Below are positions 8,506 through 56,743 of a stretch of DNA of 64,000 nt, piece after piece. A model generated the notes under the pieces. The model was not told where the DNA came from, ran no database searches, and worked only from the letters and a program-made list of their open reading frames with translations. This stretch comes from Camelus dromedarius (Eukaryota): assembly GCF_036321535.1 (NCBI RefSeq), contig NC_087454.1, positions 18,166,001-18,230,000 on the forward strand, written 5' to 3'. Position 1 is the stretch's first letter; each line of letters begins with the position of its first letter. The position numbers and the translations under genes were made by a program.

Positions 8506-10233
8506 ATTAATATTTAAATGGTTTGTATTCATATTGTTATTTTATTTTTTCTTTTATATTTTGAGATATTTTAAGATACTTTAAGCATACAGAAACTTAT
8601 AAAGACTAGCAGAAAAAATACACATACTTCACCATCCAGAATTAATAGCTATTCCTTATGGTCATACTTCCTTCTAGCTATTTGTAAAGAAATAAGCCAT
8701 TATAAATACAGAGAAAGTCACAGGTTTTGATCTAGTTTCTTCTCCAGAGACATCCACTATCATCAGTACCTTCTAAGTTCATTTGTACATATATGTTTTT
8801 TCGTAACCATTGTATAATATGTATATATACTTTAAATTTCCATTTTACAAGAGGTGGAGGAAAGCCCTTAATGCTGTCTTGATTATAAGTGTTGGTCCTC
8901 AGTTATCCAATCAGTGGATTGTCTATACACCTAGATATTATCACATCCATTCGTCACCACCATAGAAGCTTGTTGCAGCCTCTAGAGTGATGACTTTGAC
9001 AATCTTAGAATTTCCAATAAGTGTCAGAGTTTTAATGTACAAAATTTTAAAGCTGTTGTTGGGAACACATGCCACAACATGGTTTAGTTATGGCAAAGTA
9101 TTCTCAGAGCAGTAGATTTGAACTTTATTTTGTGCCCCAATGTACCTGAGAGATATAATGCATTCCCTTTTAATAAGAGTCATAATTCTATTAATTCTTA
9201 CTAACTGCTCAGGAAAACATGCAGAAGTGTTAGAATGAAACTTTGCCCTTAGTTAGCTTTACATTAGGCAATACACTCACCCTAAGACATAAAACCACTG
9301 CCAAATAATTGAGAGTACAAAGTATCACAGAAGATATAAAATCACTTAGTTCTATGGGACCATAAGAAGCAGATAAATAAAATAATCAATGTAGGATTCC
9401 AGGAAGTGGAGTTCTTTTTGAAAATAAAATGTGAATAAGAGGCAAAGCAAAGGTATTGAAAGAACTTTGAATATTAGTCCCATTTGGATTGAGTTCTAAT
9501 AGTTGCTTTTTTCTATCTCTTTCATCTTTACAGGAAAGTATTCCCAACTTCAGAAAAGCCACCCAGGAGTATATTACACCTAGGTGATGTGAAACATAAT
9601 TTTATCATAGAGGTTTAGGATAGGGCTGGGTAGAGAGGGAGGGGATATATTAGGATCCTGCTCCAGTAAATAGAACAAATGGAATCAACGGTGTAACTAT
9701 AAACAATAATGAGATCATCATCTCCCTAGGATTTTGCTTATCACTTGAACTCCCTTGAGTCTGGATATGACTCTAGGATTACCGATATTAATGAGAAAAT
9801 ATTTAGAATGAGATTTCACCTAATAGCAAGCCAGGTTCTCTGATCCAGAGACATAAGTCACTATTCCTATCCACTGTTTACATATGATTAGAAGAATTCA
9901 GTGCTTCCCTATTTAGAAAAAAAAAAAAGGAAATGACTTTGAGTGTTCATTTCCTTGTAAAATATAATCGGCTTTGAAAGTAATATTTTACTTCCTGTGA
10001 AACTGAAAACAATGATGCAAAATATTGGGGGAAAAAATCACAGCCAAAGAGCCTGAAAAATTCTCAAATACTCTGCTCTTCAGACCTAATAAAGACTAAC
10101 ACCTATTGAAATTCTGGGTCAAGCATCCAGCATTTCCAAACAAGTTCCCCTTCTACCATTTTACTAGTCATTCTATTTTGAGGGAATATATCTACACGCT
10201 TCACAGATACTCACCTCTCTCCTAACAGGTAAT

Positions 10234-11184
10234 ATGTGGTCACAGGTGATGGAAAAGGACAACACAAGTTCTTTTGAAAGATTCATCCTTGTGGGCTTCT
10301 CTGATCGTCCCCACCTAGAGCTGATCCTCTTTGTGGTTGTCCTCACTTTTTATCTGCTGACTCTTCTTGGCAACATGACCATCATCTTGCTTTCAGTTCT
10401 CGATTCCCGGCTACACACACCAATGTATTTCTTTTTGGCCAACCTCTCATTCCTAGACATGTGTTTCACCACAGGTTCCATCCCTCAGATGCTCTGCAAC
10501 CTTGGTGGTCCAGATAAGACCATCAGCTATCTCCGTTGTGCCATTCAGCTCTACTTCGTCCTGGCTCTGGGAGGAGTGGAGTGTGTCCTCCTGGCTGTCA
10601 TGGCATATGACCGTTATGCTGCAGTCTGCAAACCTCTGCACTACACTGTCATCATGCACCCACGTCTCTGTGGGCAGCTGGCTTCAGTGGCATTTCTCTT
10701 TGGCAATTCTCTCATAATGGCACCCCAGACGTTGATGCTACCTCGCTGCGGGCACAGGCGGGTGGACCACTTTCTCTGTGAGATGCCAGCACTAATTGTC
10801 ATGGCCTGTGTAGATACCATGACCCTTGAGGCATTAGCATTTACCTTGGCAATCTTTATCATCTTGGCACCACTCATCCTCATCCTCATCTCTTATGGTT
10901 ATATTGTACAAGCTGTACTTAGGATCAAGTCAGCTGCTGGACGAAAGAAAGCCTTCAACACCTGTAGCTCCCACCTCATTATTGTCTCTCTCTTCTATGG
11001 TACGATAATATACATGTACCTCCAGCCAGCAAACACTTATTCTCAGGACCAGGGCAAGTTCCTTACTCTTTTCTATACAATTGTCACTCCCAGTGTTAAC
11101 CCCCTGATTTATACACTGAGAAACAAAGATGTTAAAGAGGCCATGAAGAAGGTACTAGGGAAAGAGGGTGCAGAAGTACAGTAA
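10234..11184 (+). CDS. OR2W6: Olfactory receptor, family 2 subfamily W (OR2W6-like), single coding exon; homologous start probably the ATG at 10249
   Basis: 316-aa ORF with OR motifs [58 protein letters not shown] and N-glycosylation site NTS. It closely resembles my recollection of human OR2W6P ([15 protein letters not shown], [38 protein letters not shown]). TM4 is 2 aa shorter than in the paralogues here. Confidence 0.9.
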
Positions 11185-19670: not shown

Positions 19671-20288
19671 TATTAGTATCTTTTTTTCCCCTCAGTGTCA
19701 GAATACTTTTTATTCATTTACATGCTCATTTTAAAAATCATTTTTGTTTCATATTAGTATCTTTTTATTTTCATTCTATGAGGTCCTAAAAGGCAAAAGA
19801 CATGTTCGTTTGAAATCTGTCTGACAGCTTGCTCGAACCTATCTACAAACATAGTTTTGGGAGTGGTCTAAATACTTTTAATTGTTTCAGATGCTAGAGT
19901 AATCTCCTTGGCACTGAGGAGAAATTAGAATGAAAAAGTAATGTACCAGGAATTGTAACCAAACTTCCTAATAATAGCTATCTAGGTGGAAAGTAGTGCA
20001 AACAAAGATTAGCCAGATGACAAAAGAAAAAAAATCAAAGAACCAATTTTATTAAAGCTGTTTAAACCAGGTATTTATCTTAAATTTTTGGTTTTCATTT
20101 TTGAAGTGCTGATACAGATATAGAAAGACTGAATTTTAGAAATACTTAGATAACTAAGTATTTTTCTTGTTACAACAATATCAGTTCTGTAAATGTCTTC
20201 AAACAGAAAGGAAAGTGATTATAAATAATTGAAATAGTCAATAAATATGTTCATTGACTTCCTGAATTTTTGTTTCAGGAAACCAAGA

Positions 20289-21245
20289 ATGGAAACACTG
20301 GTCACGAATCACATAAATGACAGTATCCCACTGGAGTTTATCCTCTTAGGCTTCTCAGATCAACCATGGCTGGAGTTTCTACTCTTTGTGGTTTTCTTCA
20401 TTTCTTATATCGTGACTATCTTTGGAAATCTGACCATTATTCTAGTGTCACGCCTGGACTCCAGACTCCATACACCCATGTATTTCTTTCTTACCAATCT
20501 GTCACTCCTAGATGTTTGCTACACCACAAGCACAGTTCCACAACTGCTGGTGAATTTATACAGCACCAGGAAGGTAATTAGTTATGCTGGCTGTGTAGCC
20601 CAGCTTTTCGTGTTTCTGGCCTTGGGGGCCACTGAATGTGTTCTGCTGGCTGTCATGTCCTTTGATAGGTTTGTAGCTATTTGCTGGCCTCTCCATTACT
20701 CAGTCATCATGCACCAGAGGCTCTGCCTCCAGTTGGCGGCTGCGTCCTGGGTTACTGGTTTCAGCAACTCAGTGTGGTTATCTGCCCTGACTCTCCAACT
20801 GCCACTCTGTGGCCCTTATGTACTAGATCACTTTCTCTGTGAAGTCCCTGCTCTGCTCAAGTTGTCCTGTGTTGACACAACAGCAAATGAGGCTGAACTA
20901 TTCCTTGTAAGTGTGTTATTCCATCTGGTACCCTTGACACTTATTCTTATATCGTATGCTTTTATTGCTCAAGCAGTGTTGAGAATCCAATCTGCTGAAG
21001 GTAGACAAAAAGCATTTGGAACATGTGGCTCCCATCTGATTGTGGTGTCCCTTTTTTATGGTACAGCTGTCTCCATGTACCTGCAACCACCTTCAACCAA
21101 CTCCAAGGACCGGGGAAAGTTGGTTTCCCTCTTCTATGGAATCATCGCACCCATGCTGAACCCCCTGATATATACACTTAGAAACAAAGAGGTAAAGGAG
21201 GCATTTAAAAGGTTAGTTGCAAGAGTTTTCTCAATCAAGAAATAA
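20289..21245 (+). CDS. OR2B6: Olfactory receptor OR2B6-like; the ORF-track ATG at 20247 is probably intronic, with the first exonic ATG at 20289
   Basis: All OR motifs are present ([48 protein letters not shown]). [29 protein letters not shown] and the C-terminus LVARVFxIKK match recalled human OR2B6. Splice acceptor ttttgtttcAG at 20277-20278. Confidence 0.88.
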
Positions 21246-22810: not shown

Positions 22811-23089
22811 AGTGCCTGTTTCCATTTATTTGTATTATTTTTATTTATTATGGAACTACATCACATAATTGTCAATAAACTAAAATATTTATTTATGGTA
22901 AATGGAGATGCATGAAGAAGAAATAAGTTATAGTTACCATTTTATATCCTATAGAAAAGTCAATACTGCAAATCATTTGCCCTTAGAGTACTCCATCAAA
23001 AATTTCCTATGCCTTTTATTCAAAATGTTCATTGTAAAAGACAGCAAGTCTTCAACATGATACATTTACTATCTCCTTATAGATGAACT

Positions 23090-23230
23090 GATAAAACTGA
23101 CAATTATTAATTGAGAAAGAACTATATGTTAACACTTTGCTAGGCACTGGGGATACAGCAGTGAATGCAATGCTTAATGGGAAGTGAATATATAGTAGAG
23201 TGGAAAACTAATGAGCAATTAACAAATACA
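23090..23230 (-). mobile_element. L2 3' end fragment
   Basis: gctaggcactggggatacagcagtgaa. Confidence 0.6.
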
Positions 23231-23599
23231 ATAGAATCAAGAACTCAATGTTTATCTCTTTCTCTGTCTTGAATAAGGTGGTAATTTTTGACACAATCTT
23301 GTAAGTTCCTCTTTCTAATCTTCCTTACTTTTCTTATGAAATGCTAAGGACAGATACATAACACTTATTGATGTACCAATTGTCTTTCACAATGCCTGCA
23401 AATATGTTTGATGAATAAAGTTTATTGAATTCCCAGAGTAATTGGCATTAGGAGTTTTTTGGAAATTGCTGCTGAAGATTGAGTAGAGAACAACAAAAAA
23501 GTCACTGATAGAGAATAGCTCTCCTAGATACTCCCACTGAATCCCTGCTCAACAAAATGCCGTCCATAAGCGAGGGAATGATTATTCTAGTTATGTCAG

Positions 23600-24070
23600 G
23601 AAAGTTGAGATTTGATGGTGCGCATGCCATTAACGCGTAAAGCCTCAGGGCTGCTGAGTAGCTCTCAGAGGCAACTGTAAAGCAAAGAGAACATAATGAC
23701 AGGAGCTGAGTCACGCTAGCTCTCCACTGCAATCAGTCCTTTATTGACTGTTTCTCCTCTAAGACAGATAACCCTAGAGATTGCTCCATTTTGTGAGTTA
23801 TAATGAAACTGGCTTGAAACTTTTTAATGGCTGCATGCAGCATGGGGAGAACATGTTAATCAGTTCTGCTCTTCCAAGAGCTGGATCTCTGTGGACACGG
23901 AGAAAACAAGATCGTGGTTATCAATAGTTCAACTCTAATAGCCATTATAATGAGATCTCTAGGGTCTTGTTTTTCCTTCCAACTTGTATTAAAGAGCAGC
24001 AGAAGTTGAAAAATCACTCTTTCTCTTGCTCTAGTTTTAAATGTTACTGATGACCTCATTATGTTCATAT
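23600..24070. promoter_or_regulatory. Candidate OR enhancer or promoter: cluster of homeodomain (TAATGA/G) and O/E (EBF)-like sites
   Basis: AACTTTTTAATGG at 23818-23830. TAATGA at 23694, 23801, 23948 and (minus) 24056. ATCTCTAGGGT occurs twice in opposite orientation (23771-23781 minus, 23955-23965 plus). No repeat family recognised. Confidence 0.55.
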
Positions 24071-26438
24071 AAACACGAAACAATTGCAAAATATTTAAAG
24101 GTGGAAACAATGTACTATTACATACAGTCTTCTTCCAAGCTTACTCACACCGTTACTTTGAAAATGGCAAGAAGAAAATCAAGCTATTTAGTTAAAAAAA
24201 AAAAACTATTTTCTTATACCCTCAGATTTCAAATATTATGAAACTGAAAATTATTTGCAATACAGTAGGAGAAAAATATCTCATTGTTTTGATTTGTATT
24301 TATTTAATTACAAGTGAGACTAAAAATTTTTATAAGTTTGGGGACCATCTGTGTTGCTATTTTATTAAATTTTATCTCATTGTTCTTTGCCCATTTGTAT
24401 TACCCAGACAAGTGTAATCCTTACTTATTTTTAAAAATTTATTTGTTGGAAAAGGCCCTTTGATTACTAAAAATATTTGCTCTTTGTTCCATGTATGTGT
24501 TGTAAATATTTTTCTCTGTTTTACAAACTATTAGTAGGCTTTTTCTAAGAACTTATTGAACCAGTGCAATTTGTTCATTGGCCATAAAACTTGACTCCTA
24601 TATTGCTTTTTACTTTAGTCTTATTTCTATACCTATAAAATGATACAATTTTAAACCCAGATAACATACAAGTTTTGCTTCTGAGATGAGTTTTTTAAGG
24701 GTCAGTCATTAGTTTCAAATAACATTAGTTTGGGGAAAAATGTAAGCTTTAATGTGTCACATCAGTGAGTACGATTAATGTTTATTCTTGTGCCCGTCTT
24801 AGAGGAATCTCTCTAGACCTTAATTCACTGGTTGCAGAGATCATGTTATCATTTTGGAGGTTTTTGGGGGGCAAATTTACCTTCTCCAAAAGGTAATCAG
24901 TGTGGTTTCCACTTTTTGTTTGAATATAATTTAAAGACCATGAATGAATCAAATGCAGTCTATTTATTTTATATTTACTATATTCCAGTAACCTTACCAA
25001 TATAAGTGAAAATAAAAGTTACAAATCAGGTGACAAAGAGAAACATAATATACTTTTGCATTATCATTTTGAAAAATTATATTAAAATAGAAGGAAATTA
25101 GACTTTAAGATTCTTCCCTCAGAAGACAGACTAAATCTCATTTCAATTCAAGGATAAAAGGTGTTCAAAAGCTGTTCATATTTGCACTATGCTGCCAAAC
25201 TTTGGTGTTGCCCCACCAAACACCAGGAATATTTTCTCATAGAAATAAAAGTTCAGAGTTTTAGGATATGGATAACTGTGGCCCCAGACAGAAACCAAGA
25301 AAAGAGATTTGATTCCCAATCATCTGATGTTATTCCAAGATTTCCCCTAAGAGTATACTCCTCTATTCCCTTCTGCAGCCCAGCCAATTACCCAAAGGAG
25401 TATGCAGTTCCTATGATCGCAACAAGAAAACATGTTATGTCAACTTGGAGGCACCATTTTTGATGCTAAGAAGTTAGTCCTTCGTTTTTCAGTCCATCTG
25501 GGTCTATAAGAGCTTCCTAATCTGCACTGGTTATCTTCTGAGGGCTTTAGCTGAGAGCTCCTGAAGCCTCCTGAAGGCTGGGTATTCGGCCAAAATGGCA
25601 GGTAGACAGGGGAGGAATGCTAATGCTATTTTCTATTTCAATTGCCTCTTTTTTCCATAATTTAACTAACCTATGGCAATTATTCCATTTTGTGTTTTCT
25701 CTGAGGTAGTGATACACCATTATTCCATCACTCTAGTCAAATTATAAGAAAAAGGGATTCACATGGCATTTACAACTCTTTTATCTTCAGGAACAAACAA
25801 GACTCTAACACAAGAAAGACGGTTTGGGGCTTGATTGTCATCTCCCTTCTTAACTTAAGATCTCTGTAATCACTTTTATATAGTACCTGGTGCATTAGAC
25901 TCATATCATTCTATTGTTACTTTACCTATAGTAACTGCACAATCTTCTGTAAAATCCCAAGTAACAAATGCCAACCAAAGGGAAAAACATCAGTGTGGGT
26001 TCTCCCTATTAATGTTTTCACTTGGGAATGTTGAAACCAGGTAAGCCTAAATGATTTGAGAAAATTAAGAATATTTTCTTTTCTTTTGGTATACTGTATT
26101 TGGCTTTGGAAAATAAATTTACTATAAGAACTGAGAAGTTGAGACACTTTCACCAAAAAACAAGTTTTTTATTTGAAAATCAAAATATTTGTGACAATTT
26201 ATGTCCTACTCTGCCTTTATTTTTTCCCAGCTTACTAATTGAATATATATTATTAATTGAAGCAGTCTTTGATTCTCTAAATCACACAGCAGTCTACATA
26301 TTTTATAAGATCCATTTAATAATTTTAGTCCTTTTATTTATGCTTAAGTTGTCAAAGAATCAACATGACTAAGGGTTTAAGGTACATTTCCTTTGCACCT
26401 GCTACTCTGCTGTTTTCACGTCTGTCTCCCTTTCACAG

Positions 26439-26514
26439 AGATGCCCATGTGAAATCCCTCAGAAATCAACTGCCTAAAAAATTTTAAAAGAATTCAAAAT
26501 TTTTGTTTTCTTAG
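26439..26514 (+). other. Putative non-coding 5'UTR exon of the OR2W4-like gene
   Basis: Pyrimidine tract plus cAG at 26437-26438 and donor TAG|GTAAGC at 26515. A further strong donor CAG|GTAAGC lies at 26041. Predicted from motifs only. Confidence 0.4.
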
Positions 26515-27959
26515 GTAAGCATGTGTTTGATGTCACAGAATAATTAAATTCCTCATTTTACCCTTCTCTGCATACAGATTTTATAGGAGCTCTTCAGATA
26601 GTATTTTTAAAGAATGCTGGCATACTTCCCTAATATAGGGCATAGTTTGCATGGCAATGACCCAAGTTGATGTTATTATAAATTATGGTAGAAAAAACTA
26701 TGGTAGATATAGGTTTTTGTTTTTCAGGTAGCTAATCAATTCTGGAATTTTAGTAACTATTAATTACACAAAATAAAATTATTTTTCTTCATAATAATAA
26801 AGAAGGAAATGCTGGTATTTTTAACAAGAAACCAGAAGAAAAAGGTGACTTTTTATACTCAAAAAGTAAATATAATTTTTACTTAAATTTTCTTATCAAT
26901 TATAATTATATTTAATTTCATTATTATCCTACTATTCCTTATTCCAAATATAAGTCTGATTTTATGAACCCAGCTCTTTTTATTCTTTTTAGCCATAGTA
27001 GGGTCAATTTTTTAAATTGCTTTATAAAGTTAATCTTTATTTGCTACATTCTCCTTTTTCTCTCCATTCATCCATACTGCCATGCACCTCTCCTCTGCAA
27101 GCTAATCATGTTGTTTTGATGTTTCTAAAAGGCTACCAAAAACAAATTATATCCAAAGTTGCCATTTTATTACTGAACAGAGTATCCTCCCTGACTCTGG
27201 CAATCTAGGCTGCAGAATTATTTTTCTTTCAAAGAAATGAATGATAGAGATCTGAGTTGACAGAATTTCATGAGAATAAGACCTAGGAGTATCTAGTAGA
27301 TACAATTATAACTTAATTCAAAAAGTGTCATTGACATTATGAAGTAAATGCATACTTAATACCACATTAATAAGATTATAATAGTCCAGGTCATGGTAGG
27401 CAATAGTTTCCCTGAACCTTGTGATTTTCAAATCATATCTTGGATACTGAACTCGGCCCTGGTTGTCAGATTTCCAGAAGGTCATTGTCAACATGAGGGT
27501 ATTTGGAAGACATCTACTAGGGTGATAATATGCCTGATTACCTTGTTATACGAAGAATCATCAAAGAAAATTGAATGTCTTGTCCTAAAGAAAATTTATT
27601 TTAAATGTGGTAGCTGCCTTTAATGGCTGTCATATAAAGAGAGATTAGATATGATGTATATTCAATAAAGTTAAAATATTTTGTCTTGTGAATAAGGAGA
27701 AACACTTCTTCTTTAATAAAAAGATGATGATTATCAGTCAGAATCTTCTAACTCTGAAATAATCTGCCTTACATGTTTGAACAAATGATGTACAGCTTAT
27801 ATGGCCGGGCAGACGCTATTCCAATATTGGTTGGGTTGCTAGACTTGATGTCTTATATGTGTCTTTAAAATCCTGATATTCAATGGCTTTCAGAAAACAT
27901 AGATTAAATTTTCTTTATTTTATTCTTACCAGCTGTTCAGATGATGTGAAAGGAAGGCA

Positions 27960-28889
27960 ATGGAAAAATCCAACGACAGCTCAGAGTATGGTTTTATCTT
28001 AGTGGGATTCTCTGATCGTCCCAAACTGGAGATGGTGCTTTTCATAGTAAATTTTACTCTGTATTCAGTGGCTGTGCTGGGAAATTCAACCATAATCCTT
28101 GTATGTATATTAGACCCTCAATTTCATACCCCAATGTACTTCTTTCTGGCAAATCTTTCCTTTCTAGATCTCTGCTTCAGTACTAGTTGTATCCCACAGA
28201 TGCTGGTTAACCTCTGGGGCCCTGATAAGACTATCAGCTATGCAGGCTGTGTCGTCCAGCTTTTCTCTTTCCTTTCTGTTGGAGGAATCGAATGCATCCT
28301 TCTGGCTGTCATGGCATATGACCGCTACGCTGCAGTCTGCAAGCCCTTGCACTACATGGTCATTATGCATCCCCAGCTGTGTTTACGACTGGTGGCTGTG
28401 GCCTGGGGAAGTGGACTAGTCAATGCCATTGTCATGTCCCCACTAACAATGACTCTCTCCAGATGTGGCCAGCGACGAGTTAACCATTTCCTCTGTGAAA
28501 TGCCAGCACTGATCAAGATGGCTTGTGTGGATGCTCGTGCAGTGGAAATGCTGGCCTTTACCTTTGCCATTCTCATTGTCCTACTGCCCCTCACTCTTAT
28601 TCTTGTCTCCTATGGCTACATCGCAGCAGCAGTGCTGAGGATCAAGTCAGCTGCTGGGAGACGGAAGGCCTTCAATACCTGTAGCTCCCACCTTACTGTG
28701 GTCTCCTTGTTCTATGGGAGCATCATCTATATGTATATGCAGCCAGGAAACAGCTCTTCCCAAGACCAAGGCAAGTTTCTCACCCTCTTCTACAACCTGG
28801 TAACTCCCATGTTGAATCCACTCATCTATACCTTAAGGAATAAGGAGGTGAAAGGAGCACTGAAGAAGGTTTTGGGGAGGCAACAATGA
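27960..28889 (+). CDS. OR2W4: Olfactory receptor, OR2W subfamily (OR2W4-like by position), intact 309 aa
   Basis: Complete OR ORF (NDS glycosylation site, [52 protein letters not shown]). OR2W membership rests on similarity to the 10234 ORF; the specific symbol is inferred from recalled human gene order. Confidence 0.85.
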   Translation: MEKSNDSSEYGFILVGFSDRPKLEMVLFIVNFTLYSVAVLGNSTIILVCILDPQFHTPMYFFLANLSFLDLCFSTSCIPQMLVNLWGPDKTISYAGCVVQLFSFLSVGGIECILLAVMAYDRYAAVCKPLHYMVIMHPQLCLRLVAVAWGSGLVNAIVMSPLTMTLSRCGQRRVNHFLCEMPALIKMACVDARAVEMLAFTFAILIVLLPLTLILVSYGYIAAAVLRIKSAAGRRKAFNTCSSHLTVVSLFYGSIIYMYMQPGNSSSQDQGKFLTLFYNLVTPMLNPLIYTLRNKEVKGALKKVLGRQQ

Positions 28890-31800
28890 GCAGCAGAGGT
28901 GTGCTAAGTTGTAAAGTCCTAGGCAAAATATTTTTTTCAAACACTACCATTTATTTTGTGCTTATAATAACTTAAGCCAATGTATCAGATGCTCTTGGAT
29001 CTTTTAAGATGTGGATAAATACACTGAAGTGTACCCAGAGTCAAAGTGAATCAGCTATACCTACACATATTGTTGTATCTTTGCAACATAATACTTAGTG
29101 AAAAGAATTAAGTCCCAGAAGAAAGGTGAAATGACTCTCATATAGATATAAAACAAATATGTGTTAAAGATTTTATTCAACACAGTTAATGAGGGAACCA
29201 GGCAAAGTAATAACCAGTTCAAAAAAAAAAAAAAAAAAGACTCAAAAAGCAGAGATTTACAAGAAGTGAAGGAATGTTTGAAGTAAATGTACAAGTGGAG
29301 GCAAAAATTGCTTCTTCCACTGTGGGAAAGGTAAGTCAAATAGTTTCTACCTGACAGAACTCAATTTGCATGTCATACACAAGAACTATTTTGCTTGGCT
29401 ATCAGTTATCTATAATTTACAATGTTGTAAAATGCCTGCCACAGAATCAGAATCAGATAACCTGGAGAGGTGTCTAGACTCTAGACAATGTATAATTTTC
29501 CACTGAAGTATAAATTTGTCCCTTAAAGCTCAACTATATATCTTACTCATGTTATAAAACTGAGTAGTCTCAAGTTTCTTACACACTTGTAGGTATTTTC
29601 ATCCTGATTTTTTAAATAGCGAAACTTTGGTTTATAGATTCTGTGTAAATGAACCTGAGTCACACAGTAGATAACTGGAATTCAAAACCGGTGTGTACAA
29701 ATCTGAGCCTCTGTTGATAGCCACCTTTGTTACAGAGTGTGTAGTGCATGTCAGGTGACCTTGTTTTCTTGTACAATCCTTTAATCATGCTGAGTATGCT
29801 ATAGATCCTATAAAACTCTCACCATTTAGAAGCTCACTAATTTTTCTTTAACTGTTAATACCACATCATCCCTTCCCACATTGTCCCATGAAAATCCCCT
29901 GTCCGAATCTTTCCCATGCTTCAGTGGTCAGCTCTAACACAATACATTTGTAAAATTATCTGGGACTCTGATTTTAAAATGTTCTGTCACTCCTTTTAAA
30001 CTATCACATTTTTATACAATGAAATAACAGTTCTTCTAGTTAATATATTATATGTTTTATATATTCTTATTGGACTGTAAATTTCTTGATGGTAGAACTA
30101 TTTTTTTTAATCCTTCTTAGCACCATTTCAGGTATTAAGTTGTTGTTAAGATGCCTTATAGACAGTAAGTGATCAATAATAACTCAAGATGATCATTAAT
30201 TTTAATTGATTAATTATATCCAGAAATTATTCCTTCATTTTATTTGATGCACTGTCTAAATCTTTGTTCTTCAAGATTATGATTGAATCTATCACAATAT
30301 TCTGTTTGAGTTTAAACTGCTATCAGATGTTTCATGCTTTTTTTAAATCAATTAAACATAAACTCCATAAAGAGAGAGAAAAAAAAGTCATTAAGGAATC
30401 TCCATGGGTATGAAAAATCAGCCCCAACTTTTGGGGAACAAACTTTTTTTTCCTAAATATCAATCTTAAACTCAAGGAGAATTGCTATGAATTCTGCCAT
30501 GGTCTAGAGGCTGTTTTGACAGTGACAACAAATCAGAATTTTAAACCTCTTCTGTTGACATAAGAAAGGTATTCCTCCCCTCCTCATTCAAATTATTTTC
30601 TTGGATACAATGCCCTCAGAGTCCCCATTTCATTATTCCTTATTTGTTACCCAATTCTCATTGTTAATCAATCATTAAAACAACTGAAAATATTTTTTAA
30701 AGCCTCTATAAATATGAGTGGAATAATATATGTTTGCAAATCATATAAATGCTGGAAAGTTAGAAAATGGCCTTTGTGGAAGGCAGTGGGAATGATTATG
30801 TAATACTGAATTTTACACTGAAAATGGAAATTACTCTTAATGAGTATATGGATGTTTAAGTAGAAAAAATGCTTTAAATGAACATTACTGTTGTCTCTGG
30901 TACAGTTGCATGTACTTTCTCAAGGCACTGAGATTTCAGTTAGGTAACACCTAGAATTCTACTCTTGGGATTACATAGCCCCCCATATCATGTGTTATAT
31001 AGATCTGATGATTTCCAAAATAGCCTTTACTTCTATGCTTCTTTTTCTTTTGTATTTGTTTAAGAAAATGTCAATAGTAACTTAATACCTTAGGAAGGCA
31101 CATTTATTTTGCATATTCTGTATTTTACAGAATATTTGTCTTGAAATAATTTATTGGGTGTATTCTTATGACAGAATCAAAAAAATGTTTATTTCAGTGT
31201 GAGAGGACTAACATCCAGTTAAAATAATTTAGAAAGGTATAACAGAACAAATTTAAACATAGAATGACTATCATACATCTATTGTAAAATAAGTTACATG
31301 GATTGTTGATCTTATATGATCTCCCTTTTACTCCTGGTGTACTCCCTATAGACATGTTCAGGATTTTTCACAGCAATTTATCTACCCTGTCTCTACTGTG
31401 ACAGAAAGAAATTCTCTTGGACATTAGAAGTTTTTACTACCTTTAGACGTGCTAAAAAAAAATGATACACAAATTCAAACTTGTTTCCTCTGAAGTACTT
31501 TGTTGTATTAGGGGATCACTTTTTAAATGATCACTCAAAGGAATGAATCCATAATATGAAAATACCAGTCATCATTGAGGCTTATTAAAAATAATATTTA
31601 TCAATTTGAGGAGGGCTCACAAAACTCCACAAAGACATAGCTATTCACATCCATTCTATGTGAAATTAAATTAAATATCACAATTATAATTGATAAGAAA
31701 ATTTAAATTAAAAGTATATGTACTTCTTAAATATAAAAAGTAACTTCTTTCTTCTGGTTTCTTGTTTGAAATACCAACATTTCCTTCCTTATGATTATGA

Positions 31801-35963: not shown

Positions 35964-36937
35964 ATAATACTCAATGGTGAAAAGTTGAAAGCCTTCCCAC
36001 TAAAATCTGGAACAAGACAAAGATGCCTACTCTTACCACTTCTGTTCAACATATTATTGAAAGTCCCAGCCATAGCAATCAGACAAGAAGAAAAATAAAA
36101 ATAAAAGTGATCCAAATTGGAAGGGAAGAGGTAAAATTGTCACTATATGCGGATGACATGATACTATATATGGAAAACCCTAAAGATGCCACACAAACAC
36201 TAGTAGAGCTGATAAACAAGTCAACAAAGTAGCTGGTTACAAGATTAACATACAGAAATCTATTGTATTTCTTCATACTAACAATGAAATAACAGAAAAG
36301 GAAAGTAAAAAACAATCCCTTTTAAAATTGCTTCAAAAAAATACTTATGAATAAAGTTGACCAATGAAGGGAAAGACNNNNNNNNNNNNNNNNNNNNNNN
36401 NNNNNNNNNNNNNNNNNNNNNNNNNNNNNNNNNNNNNNNNNNNNNNNNNNNNNNNNNNNNNNNNNNNNNNNNNNNNNNNNNNNNNNNNNNNNNNNNNNNN
36501 NNNNNNNNNNNNNNNNNNNNNNNNNNNNNNNNNNNNNNNNNNNNNNNNNNNNNNNNNNNNNNNNNNNNNNNNNNNNNNNNNNNNNNNNNNNNNNNNNNNN
36601 NNNNNNNNNNNNNNNNNNNNNNNNNNNNNNAGAACAAAGCTGAAGGAATAACCCTCCCAGACTTCAGACAATACTACAAAGCTACTGTAAGCAAAACAGC
36701 GTGGTACTGGCACAAAAACAGACATATGGATGAATGGAACAGAATAGAGAGCCCAGAAATAAACCCACACACTTACGGTCAATTAATCTTCAATAAAGGA
36801 GGCAAGAATGTGCAATGGAGAAAAGACAGTCTCTTTAACAAGTAGTGTTGGGAAAGCTGGACAGCCACATGTAAATCAATGAAGTTAGAACACTCCCTCA
36901 CACCATGCACAAAAATAAACTCAAAATGGCTTAAAGA
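35964..36937 (+). mobile_element. Young L1 ORF2 fragment (RT domain onward), spanning the N gap, without poly-A
   Basis: [39 protein letters not shown] (YADD catalytic motif), [46 protein letters not shown]. Confidence 0.92.
36378..36630. other. Assembly gap or masked run (253 N)
   Basis: Direct. Confidence 1.
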
Positions 36938-55804: not shown

Positions 55805-56743
55805 TCATCTGGAGTCAGAGTCCTTCCAAAACACCTTCTTCATTGCTGCCTTCACATCCTTGTTCCGCAGTGTGTATATCAGGGGGTTGATCATGGGGGA
55901 AACGACAGTGTAGAAGAGAGCTATGACCTTGCCCTGATCCTGGGAGTAGTTGTTCCTGGGCTGGGCATAAGCATAGATGGCTGTGCCATAGAACAGGGAG
56001 ACCACGGTCAGGTGGGATCCACATGTCCCAAATGCTTTTCTCTGCCCTGCAGCAGACTTCATTCTTAAGATTGCCCTGGCAATCTGAACATAGGAGAACA
56101 TGATTAATGCCACAGGTATGAAAAGAATGAAGACACTGAGAAAGAAGAGCTCAGACTCATTCCTAGTGGTGTCAACACAGGCAAGCTTGAGCAAAGGAGG
56201 GACCTCACAAAAGAAGTGGTCTAATTCATTTCTGCCACAAAGTGGTAAAAGGAAGATGAGCACTGTCTGCAATAAGGAGTTGGCAAAACCAACGAGCCAT
56301 GAAGCAGAAGCCATCAGGGCACAGAGACAAGGGTGCATGATCACTGTGTAGTGAAGGGGCCTGCAAACAGCTGCATAGCGGTCAAATGCCATTACTGCTA
56401 ACAGAATGCATTCTGTACATCCCAACCCCAGAGAGGTGAACAGCTGAACTACACACCCACCGAAGGAGATAGATTTGTCTGCTCCACTGAGATTAACGAG
56501 GAACTGGGGAACAATGCTGGTAGTGTAACACAGGTCCAGGAAGCTTAGGTTGGAAAGGAAAAAGTACATAGGGGTGTGAAGTTGTGGGTCCACATAGGAC
56601 AATGCAATGATGGTTGAGTTTCCCAGCAAAGTGAAGGTGTAGAAAATCAGAAGAACCACAAAGAGGACTAGCTCCAGTTGAGGCCTGTCAGAGAAACCTA
56701 GCAGGATAAACCCGGTGAAAGAACTTCCATTTTTCTGTTCCAT
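55805..56743 (-). CDS. OR2B8: Olfactory receptor OR2B8-like, intact 312 aa
   Basis: Complete OR ORF. The N-terminus [35 protein letters not shown] and the C-terminus [11 protein letters not shown] match recalled human OR2B8P. Acceptor tttgtcttgacAG on the minus strand at 56765-56764. Confidence 0.9.

Follow-up and report, generated by a model that had tools for sequence, protein, structure and literature searches.

The block at positions 23600-24070 probably forms the central part of a cis-regulatory module, conserved and intergenic, in the OR2B/OR2W cluster and represents the camel ortholog of the mouse enhancer candidate Iraklia, of the Greek Island class. It is orthologous to the mouse site, and its motifs are conserved across 10 mammals. 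Published data show that, in olfactory sensory neurons, the mouse site is occupied by Lhx2 and lies in open chromatin. The camel element is a known kind of OR enhancer candidate, the counterpart of published Iraklia, and not a new kind. Orthology to the Lhx2-bound mouse site and to Iraklia supports the original prediction of a Greek-island or H/P-type enhancer. The term 'super-enhancer', used there, is too strong: Monahan 2017 classes the mouse peak as Lhx2-only, and the homeodomain-O/E spacer is one base off canonical. To call it 'the' element controlling OR choice in the cluster, as had been suggested, is likewise excessive, given that the mouse cluster also contains the islands Tils, Halki and Schinousa.

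The window, i.e. the whole stretch of DNA analysed, is 64,000 nt long and holds four intact ORs of a camelid class II OR cluster, each with Pfam 7tm_4 (Table 1). The mouse ortholog of the camel OR at 27960 is Olfr1362/MOR256-8 (92% identity); the mouse counterpart of camel OR2B6 is Olfr11, by gene order. The downstream gene had been taken for OR2W4, a name that does not hold: the NCBI name for its relatives is putative OR2W6, and the mouse gene is Olfr1362. The block lies 2.4 kb beyond the OR2B6 stop codon and 3.9 kb ahead of the ATG of the third OR. It forms the 3' half of a longer conserved element (~23168-24063), located 1.9-2.8 kb beyond the OR2B6 stop codon and 3.9-4.8 kb ahead of the next ATG. 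The OR2B6 ORF is 332 aa long, also in Camelus ferus; most orthologs have 312-313 aa. Its first ATG may be 5' of the start codon really used. Positions 36378-36630 are 253 N (gap or masked).

Table 1. Features of the camel OR cluster and of the conserved element (positions in the window).
Feature	Position	Strand	Basis or remark
Intact OR, putative OR2W6 protein cluster	10234-11184	+	Pfam 7tm_4, exact protein look-up
OR2B6 coding sequence, upstream neighbour; candidate target gene	20247-21245	+	7tm_4, exact look-up
Conserved non-coding element	23168-24063	.	alignment in 9 other mammals; single copy
Ortholog of mouse candidate OR enhancer Iraklia	23401-23957	.	Wu 2024, via L003 (mouse locus) and 10-species alignment
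TCCCAGAGTAATTGG, O/E-like half overlapping TAATTG homeodomain core	23431-23445	+	10/10 species, small variation
Ortholog of mouse Lhx2 ChIP-seq peak	23516-24032	.	Monahan 2017 fig1-data1 mapped to camel
NRF1-like TGCGCATGC	23619-23627		read from sequence
O/E-like site CCTCAGGG, camel form CCTCAGGGC	23643-23651	+	sequence and 10-species alignment
AP-1 site TGAGTCA	23707-23713		read from sequence
Degraded canonical Lhx2 site, camel TTTATTGAC	23740-23748	+	8/10 species TTAATTGAC; Bubalus TTAACTGAC
O/E-like 11-mer ACCCTAGAGAT, i.e. ATCTCTAGGGT on minus strand	23771-23781	-	8/10 match to TCCCNNGGGA
TATAATGAAAC homeodomain-type site	23799-23809	+	among most conserved 12-mers
Extended homeodomain site, AAACTTTTTAAT	23817-23830	+	sequence and 10-species alignment
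13-mer AACTTTTTAATGG	23818-23830	+	12/13 match to H/P extended homeodomain sequence AACTTTTTAATGA
O/E-like site, camel ATCTCTGTGGAC	23885-23896	+	7/9 other species TCCCTGTGGA, 9/10 consensus match
TAATGA-GA-TCTCTAGGGT, homeodomain core and O/E-like site, 2-nt spacer, composite-like	23948-23965	+	sole pair of its kind in window
TAATGA-G-ATCTCTAGGGT	23948-23965	+	read from sequence
ATCTCTAGGGT, reverse complement of ACCCTAGAGAT	23955-23965	+	identical inverted second 11-mer
Invariant 3' module with CCAACTT (23979-85), GAAGTTGAAAAA (24002-13), CTCTAGTTTTAAAT (24029-42)	23979-24042	.	highest invariant 12-mers
TATA-like TATTAAAG	23987-94		inside 3' module
Likely true promoter of downstream OR; invariant AATTACCCAAAGGAG at 25386-25400	25385-25449	+	mapped mouse start site
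Downstream OR, putative OR2W6 protein cluster, 309 aa; candidate target gene	27960-28889	+	7tm_4, exact look-up
OR2B8	55805-56743	-	Pfam 7tm_4, exact protein look-up

Mouse coordinates are carried over as mm10 = 21621968 - L003 position, with the ATG at L003 10001. The map is confirmed to the base: the AG that ends at the boundary L003 9376/9377 and the GTAAGA that begins at 8623 coincide with the exon ends published for Olfr1362 (exons 21610978-21612591 and 21613346-21614022, mm10 minus strand; Ibarra-Soria 2014). A mature-neuron Lhx2 ChIP-seq peak is listed at chr13:21618522-21618988 with the label 'Lhx2_only_OR' and Lhx2mean 5.98 (Monahan 2017, fig1-data1); its centre maps to camel 23785, within the homeodomain/O/E cluster. 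Iraklia is mm10 chr13:21618597-21619098, chromatin-accessibility peak 214572 (Wu 2024, Nat Methods, Supplementary Table 3), one of 27 newly identified OR enhancers. Wu 2024 selected these by location in an OR cluster, a mature-neuron accessibility peak, overlapping peaks of both Lhx2 and Ebf, and presence of a composite motif. Overlap with mouse ChIP-seq, accessibility and annotated islands had been proposed as a check on the enhancer reading; the ortholog of the block is an Lhx2 peak, an accessibility peak and a named enhancer candidate, Iraklia. Two islands of the 2017 set on mouse chr13, Tils and Halki, were considered as orthologs and rejected: they lie about 267 kb from Olfr1362, beside Olfr1367.

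The two sources differ on Ebf at the mouse site, labelled Lhx2-only in Monahan 2017 and counted by Wu 2024 as overlapping both Lhx2 and Ebf peaks. Given the Lhx2-only call, Ebf co-binding therefore rests on the re-intersection of the same ChIP data by Wu 2024. Many of the 27 enhancers of Wu 2024 coincide with 'Lhx2_only_OR' peaks of Monahan 2017 (for example Schinousa, Skiros, Rineia, Ithaca, Spetses, Strongyli and Kalolimnos); by this overlap the two studies disagree on Ebf co-binding from the same data.

The camel element and Iraklia occupy the orthologous place upstream of the Olfr1362 ortholog, with 66% identity over about 850 nt. They share the AAACTTTTTAAT site, O/E-like sites of the ACCC..GAGA and TCCCTGTGGA types, and an inverted CAACTT pair. 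The distance to the ATG is 6.5-7.3 kb in mouse, whereas it is 3.9-4.8 kb in camel. TAATTG (23740) is kept in Iraklia and missing in camel; conversely, the TAATGA half of the homeodomain-O/E pair is lost in Iraklia and kept in camel. The chromatin data for Iraklia come from mouse, whereas the camel element is known from sequence.

The comparison comprises 10 kb either side of the orthologous OR in each mammal. The element aligns at the corresponding place upstream of this OR in Bubalus, Lynx, Ursus, Nycticebus, Aotus, Oryctolagus, Cavia, Mus and Grammomys, i.e. in 9 of 9 mammals whose locus extended far enough (the Cricetulus element lies beyond the 10 kb flank). The scope is placental mammals within Boreoeutheria. 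The mouse conservation anticipated in the original prediction is found, the element being alignable at the orthologous mouse chr13 OR locus. It is the strongest camel-mouse non-coding match of the intergenic region (E=3e-37). Analysed from 23168 onward, with the 5' limit not fixed; the 3' edge is sharp, at 24047-24063. Further camel-mouse alignable non-coding patches are present in the same intergenic region at 22840-22932, 24092-24202 and 24458-24903.

Camel-mouse identity (66% over about 850 nt) is modestly higher than the 62% at fourfold-degenerate sites, for which 102 sites from the adjacent OR coding sequence were used; of the 7 species pairs listed, 5 have a pairwise identity higher than at fourfold sites. 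Of the camel columns, 20% are invariant in 10 species (30% if gapped columns are left out); the fourfold-degenerate sites give 14.7%. Invariance is found at 33 of the 93 positions flagged in the original prediction and at 75 of the 378 unflagged positions (Fisher p=0.0014). As judged from the alignment, the constraint is located in the motifs. The flagged motifs fall into two groups. Conserved are AAACTTTTTAAT, both 11-mers, CCTCAGGG, TAATGA at 23801 and TAATGA-GA-TCTCTAGGG at 23948; about half are camel-only, namely the NRF1-like and AP-1 sites and the homeodomain cores at 23627, 23694 and 24056.

Among individual sites, AAAC.TT.AA of the extended homeodomain site (23817) is retained in 10 of 10 species; across the site, 9.0 of the 10 species on average agree with camel. 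In the 11-mer at 23771, 7 of 11 columns are invariant, among them the CCC..GAGA core. The site at 23643 reads TCYCCAGGGC in most species and is a perfect TCCCCAGGGA in rabbit. TCCCAGAGTAATT at 23431 is conserved and stands outside the block. The TAAT core of the TATAATGAAAC site is altered in Mus, Cavia, Nycticebus and Aotus.

Adjacent Lhx2+Ebf composite sites, with 1 bp between, are borne by Greek Islands, a premise of the original prediction that the literature upholds. An adjacent homeodomain-O/E pair is indeed present in camel at 23948, as predicted; its spacer is 2 nt, whereas that of the canonical composite is 1 nt. Pairs with a 2-nt spacer occur once in the window against 0.10 expected. 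TAATGA-NN-TCYCNNGGG (23948) is retained in 8 of 10 species and degraded in Mus and Grammomys. The 1-nt-spaced composite TAATKR-N-TCYCNNRGR is absent from the window. In gel-shift competition a 2-bp insertion weakens the composite; 8 of 63 accepted islands likewise have no composite with a score over 5. WWAHDRRBHHHHNDRDD, the degenerate composite pattern from the literature, matches at 23947; it was rejected as evidence and discriminates nothing, because 329 matches are found in the window against 282 expected.

The features of the canonical composite are split in camel: the extended homeodomain site (23817) is without an adjoining O/E site, and at 23948 the spacer differs by one nucleotide. 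The composite of Sfaktiria, AACTTTTTAATTGATCTCCAAGGA (reference AACTTTTTAATTGA-TCTCCAAGGA), consists of the same blocks, with a AACTTTTTAAT-type homeodomain site in camel too. Shared with camel in this type of composite is a TAAT core abutting a degenerate TCTC..GG-type Ebf site in the same orientation.

Several observations weaken the enhancer reading. No O/E site with <=1 mismatch to the consensus is found in the camel block; the camel O/E-like sites are all weak (8/10 match to consensus), two of them weakened by TCCC -> TCTC and CCCC -> CCTC (23643, 23887), and the canonical TAATTG (23740), kept in 8 of 10 species, is lost. Against these losses stand three TAATGA/CATTA cores (23627, 23694, 24056) gained in camel and absent in other species. 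From sequence comparison, the losses and gains together look like site turnover.

The same observations bear on an unlikely reading, that of a weak and perhaps decaying site of Lhx2 binding that influences camel OR choice slightly or not at all, i.e. alignable ancestral DNA with motifs partly maintained. The loss of TAATTG and the weakening of two O/E sites would fit decay, whereas the three gained homeodomain cores are turnover-like. The mouse peak belongs to the Lhx2-only class of Monahan 2017, whose singly bound peaks 'barely pass' the threshold; its signal of 5.98, however, ranks about 8th among the 51 Lhx2-only peaks of OR clusters (in about 36 Mb), and Wu 2024 independently lists the site as an accessibility peak and names it as an enhancer. 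The invariant columns cluster with only modest significance (P about 0.03), and identity between camel and mouse is only slightly higher than at fourfold sites; most lineages have nevertheless kept the homeodomain-O/E pair, the AAACTTTTTAAT core and both 11-mers for roughly 90 million years.

The original prediction named the promoter of the downstream OR as an alternative. It is disfavoured, because the mouse Olfr1362 start (mm10 21614022), which Monahan 2017 also takes as the OR promoter, maps not to the block but to camel 25449, about 1.4 kb downstream. By this mapping the block stands about 1.4-2 kb upstream of the likely promoter, at which the invariant AATTACCCAAAGGAG, a homeodomain core abutting O/E-like CCCAAAGGA, is positioned about 50 nt upstream of 25449. 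OR proximal promoters are recognised by a start within about 200 bp downstream of the homeodomain/O/E sites and by splicing of a first exon to the coding one; the mouse transcript model shows neither at the position of the block.

Quite unlikely, too, is a function of the block as an alternative upstream promoter with a first non-coding exon of the downstream OR, or as an enhancer-RNA start site. OR promoters share with the block homeodomain and O/E motifs in the same grammar (Lhx2 and Ebf motifs are enriched there), AT-rich sequence and a TATA-like element; the block is nevertheless separated by about 1.4-2 kb from the downstream position that corresponds to the mapped start. TATA-like TATAAAG occurs about 35 nt past the homeodomain-O/E pair in 6 of 10 species (camel TATTAAAG at 23987), and the most invariant 12-mers of the element stand directly after it, but no conserved GT donor is present at the 3' edge of the block in the 10-species alignment. 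OR transcripts often have complex 5' ends; the RNA-seq model of Olfr1362, however, starts at the equivalent of 25449, where a separate invariant homeodomain site stands about 50 nt 5' of the start, and is without an exon at the position of Iraklia. OR promoters are mostly unbound and closed in bulk mature neurons, whereas the mouse ortholog of the block is bound and open, with Lhx2 and accessibility peaks.

No start site of Olfr1362 is given in Young 2011. The mouse splice donor GT (L003 8623) is AT at the aligned camel position ~26124; camel must therefore use another donor. Metagenome contigs with Olfr1362, considered as spliced transcripts, were rejected, being collinear with the genome. 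RNA-labelled 'reproductive system metagenome' runs contain 0.6-0.86 of the sampled words of 23000-28999 (a mostly intergenic 6 kb); carried-over genomic DNA and pervasive transcription could both explain this signal.

All motifs quoted in the original prediction are present in the block at the positions given for them, the TAATGA/TAATGG homeodomain cores included. Their density exceeds background in part. The block has 7 TAATKR cores where 1.6 are expected, which ranks it in the top 0.1% of same-length segments; its homeodomain core density is the highest in the window. The 11-mer occurs twice against 0.02 expected, a count reached in 0 of 100 shuffles. Not significant are the 13-mer alone (with <=1 mismatch, 1 occurrence in the window against 0.66 expected) and the O/E-like sites with <=2 mismatches (3 in the block against 1.2 expected). 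The joint homeodomain and O/E count of the block is matched nowhere else in the 64 kb. CAACTT is present in 3 copies against 0.36 expected, one of them at 23602-23607. The CpG excess over the flanks, predicted earlier, amounts to a modest rise in observed/expected ratio (0.31 in the block, 0.14 in the window) with just 6 CpGs, not to a CpG island. No tandem repeats are found in the block, and in the Rfam scan no family comes close to its gathering score. One copy of the block is present in the window and one in each of 9 related loci of 21 kb.

Very improbable, and largely refuted already, is an origin of the block in a chance accumulation of short AT-rich motifs or in an interspersed repeat: in the AT-rich window 0.66 occurrences of the 13-mer alone are expected, O/E-like sites with <=2 mismatches are not enriched and about half of the listed motifs are camel-only, but the block is single copy in the window plus 9 x 21 kb related loci, is conserved at the orthologous place in 9 other mammals and coincides with published ChIP and accessibility peaks that jointly cover well under 1% of OR-cluster DNA.

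Assignment of the block to the Greek Island class draws on the following characters. Intergenic in an OR cluster and off start sites, the nearest mapped start being at least 1.4 kb away (25449). Lhx2 occupancy in mature neurons (published data) and open chromatin (accessibility peak 214572, Wu 2024) are found at the mouse ortholog. A composite with Lhx2 and Ebf sites 1 bp apart is absent in camel. Of the characters of the H/P core, the extended homeodomain sequence AACTTTTTAATGA is present with 12/13 matches at 23818-23830, and neighbouring conserved O/E-like sites are present at 23643, 23771, 23885 and 23955, plus 23431.

The 13-mer is common to the H and P elements, as the original prediction assumed (PMC7804114), and the extended homeodomain sequence is shared by H, P and the P3 promoter with camel. 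Neighbouring O/E-like sites, a core of a few hundred bp and mammalian conservation are likewise common to H, P and the camel element. Sequence orthology is not; motif grammar alone is shared. H and P act on nearby ORs, as proven by deletion and transgenes, and far from all islands have been tested for activity (review). H and P are proven enhancers, whereas the camel element is a candidate from sequence and orthology.

As an enhancer of the Iraklia type, the element would be bound in olfactory neurons by Lhx2 (with Ldb1) at the homeodomain sites AAACTTTTTAATGG, TATAATGAAAC and TAATGA at 23948, and in most species also at TAATTG at 23740. Ebf/O-E proteins would bind, more weakly, at four or five degenerate O/E-like sites. 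Such binding is predicted to keep roughly 500 bp open amid OR heterochromatin, and the open element would raise the choice probability of neighbouring ORs, mainly in cis. Candidate targets are the Olfr1362 ortholog at 27960 and OR2B6 at 20247. The element may also join inter-enhancer hubs.

A recently added weak Greek Island, Iraklia, is conserved from mouse to camel at the motif level, which argues for a real regulatory element and not a peak-calling artefact. With orthology as the anchor, OR enhancers can be annotated in non-model mammals. For testing the grammar of OR enhancers the element offers a natural series of changes: artiodactyls have lost TAATTG, murids have lost the homeodomain half of the pair, and the spacer has 2 nt where the canonical composite has 1. 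OR enhancer candidates are recognisable from raw sequence alone. The current understanding of OR choice is unchanged by the camel element.

The part of the element that varies least is of a different kind from the homeodomain and O/E sites: the CAACTT pair followed by CTCTAGTTTTAAAT. CCAACTT (23979-85) has its inverse within GAAGTTGAAAAA, and the inverted pair (camel 23979-85 and 24002-08) has a spacing of 21-23 nt in 10 of 10 mammals. It is conceivable, if rather unlikely, that the pair marks an unrecognised third factor or an architectural feature of OR enhancers, and, in a related way, that the 2-nt homeodomain-O/E pair represents a second functional spacing class. If the latter were so, decay of the pair in murids would explain the weak Ebf signal at Iraklia. 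AACTT also begins the extended homeodomain sequence. In the ~400 nt that Monahan 2017 prints from the Lipsi island (Supplementary file 6), CAACTT is seen by eye three times.
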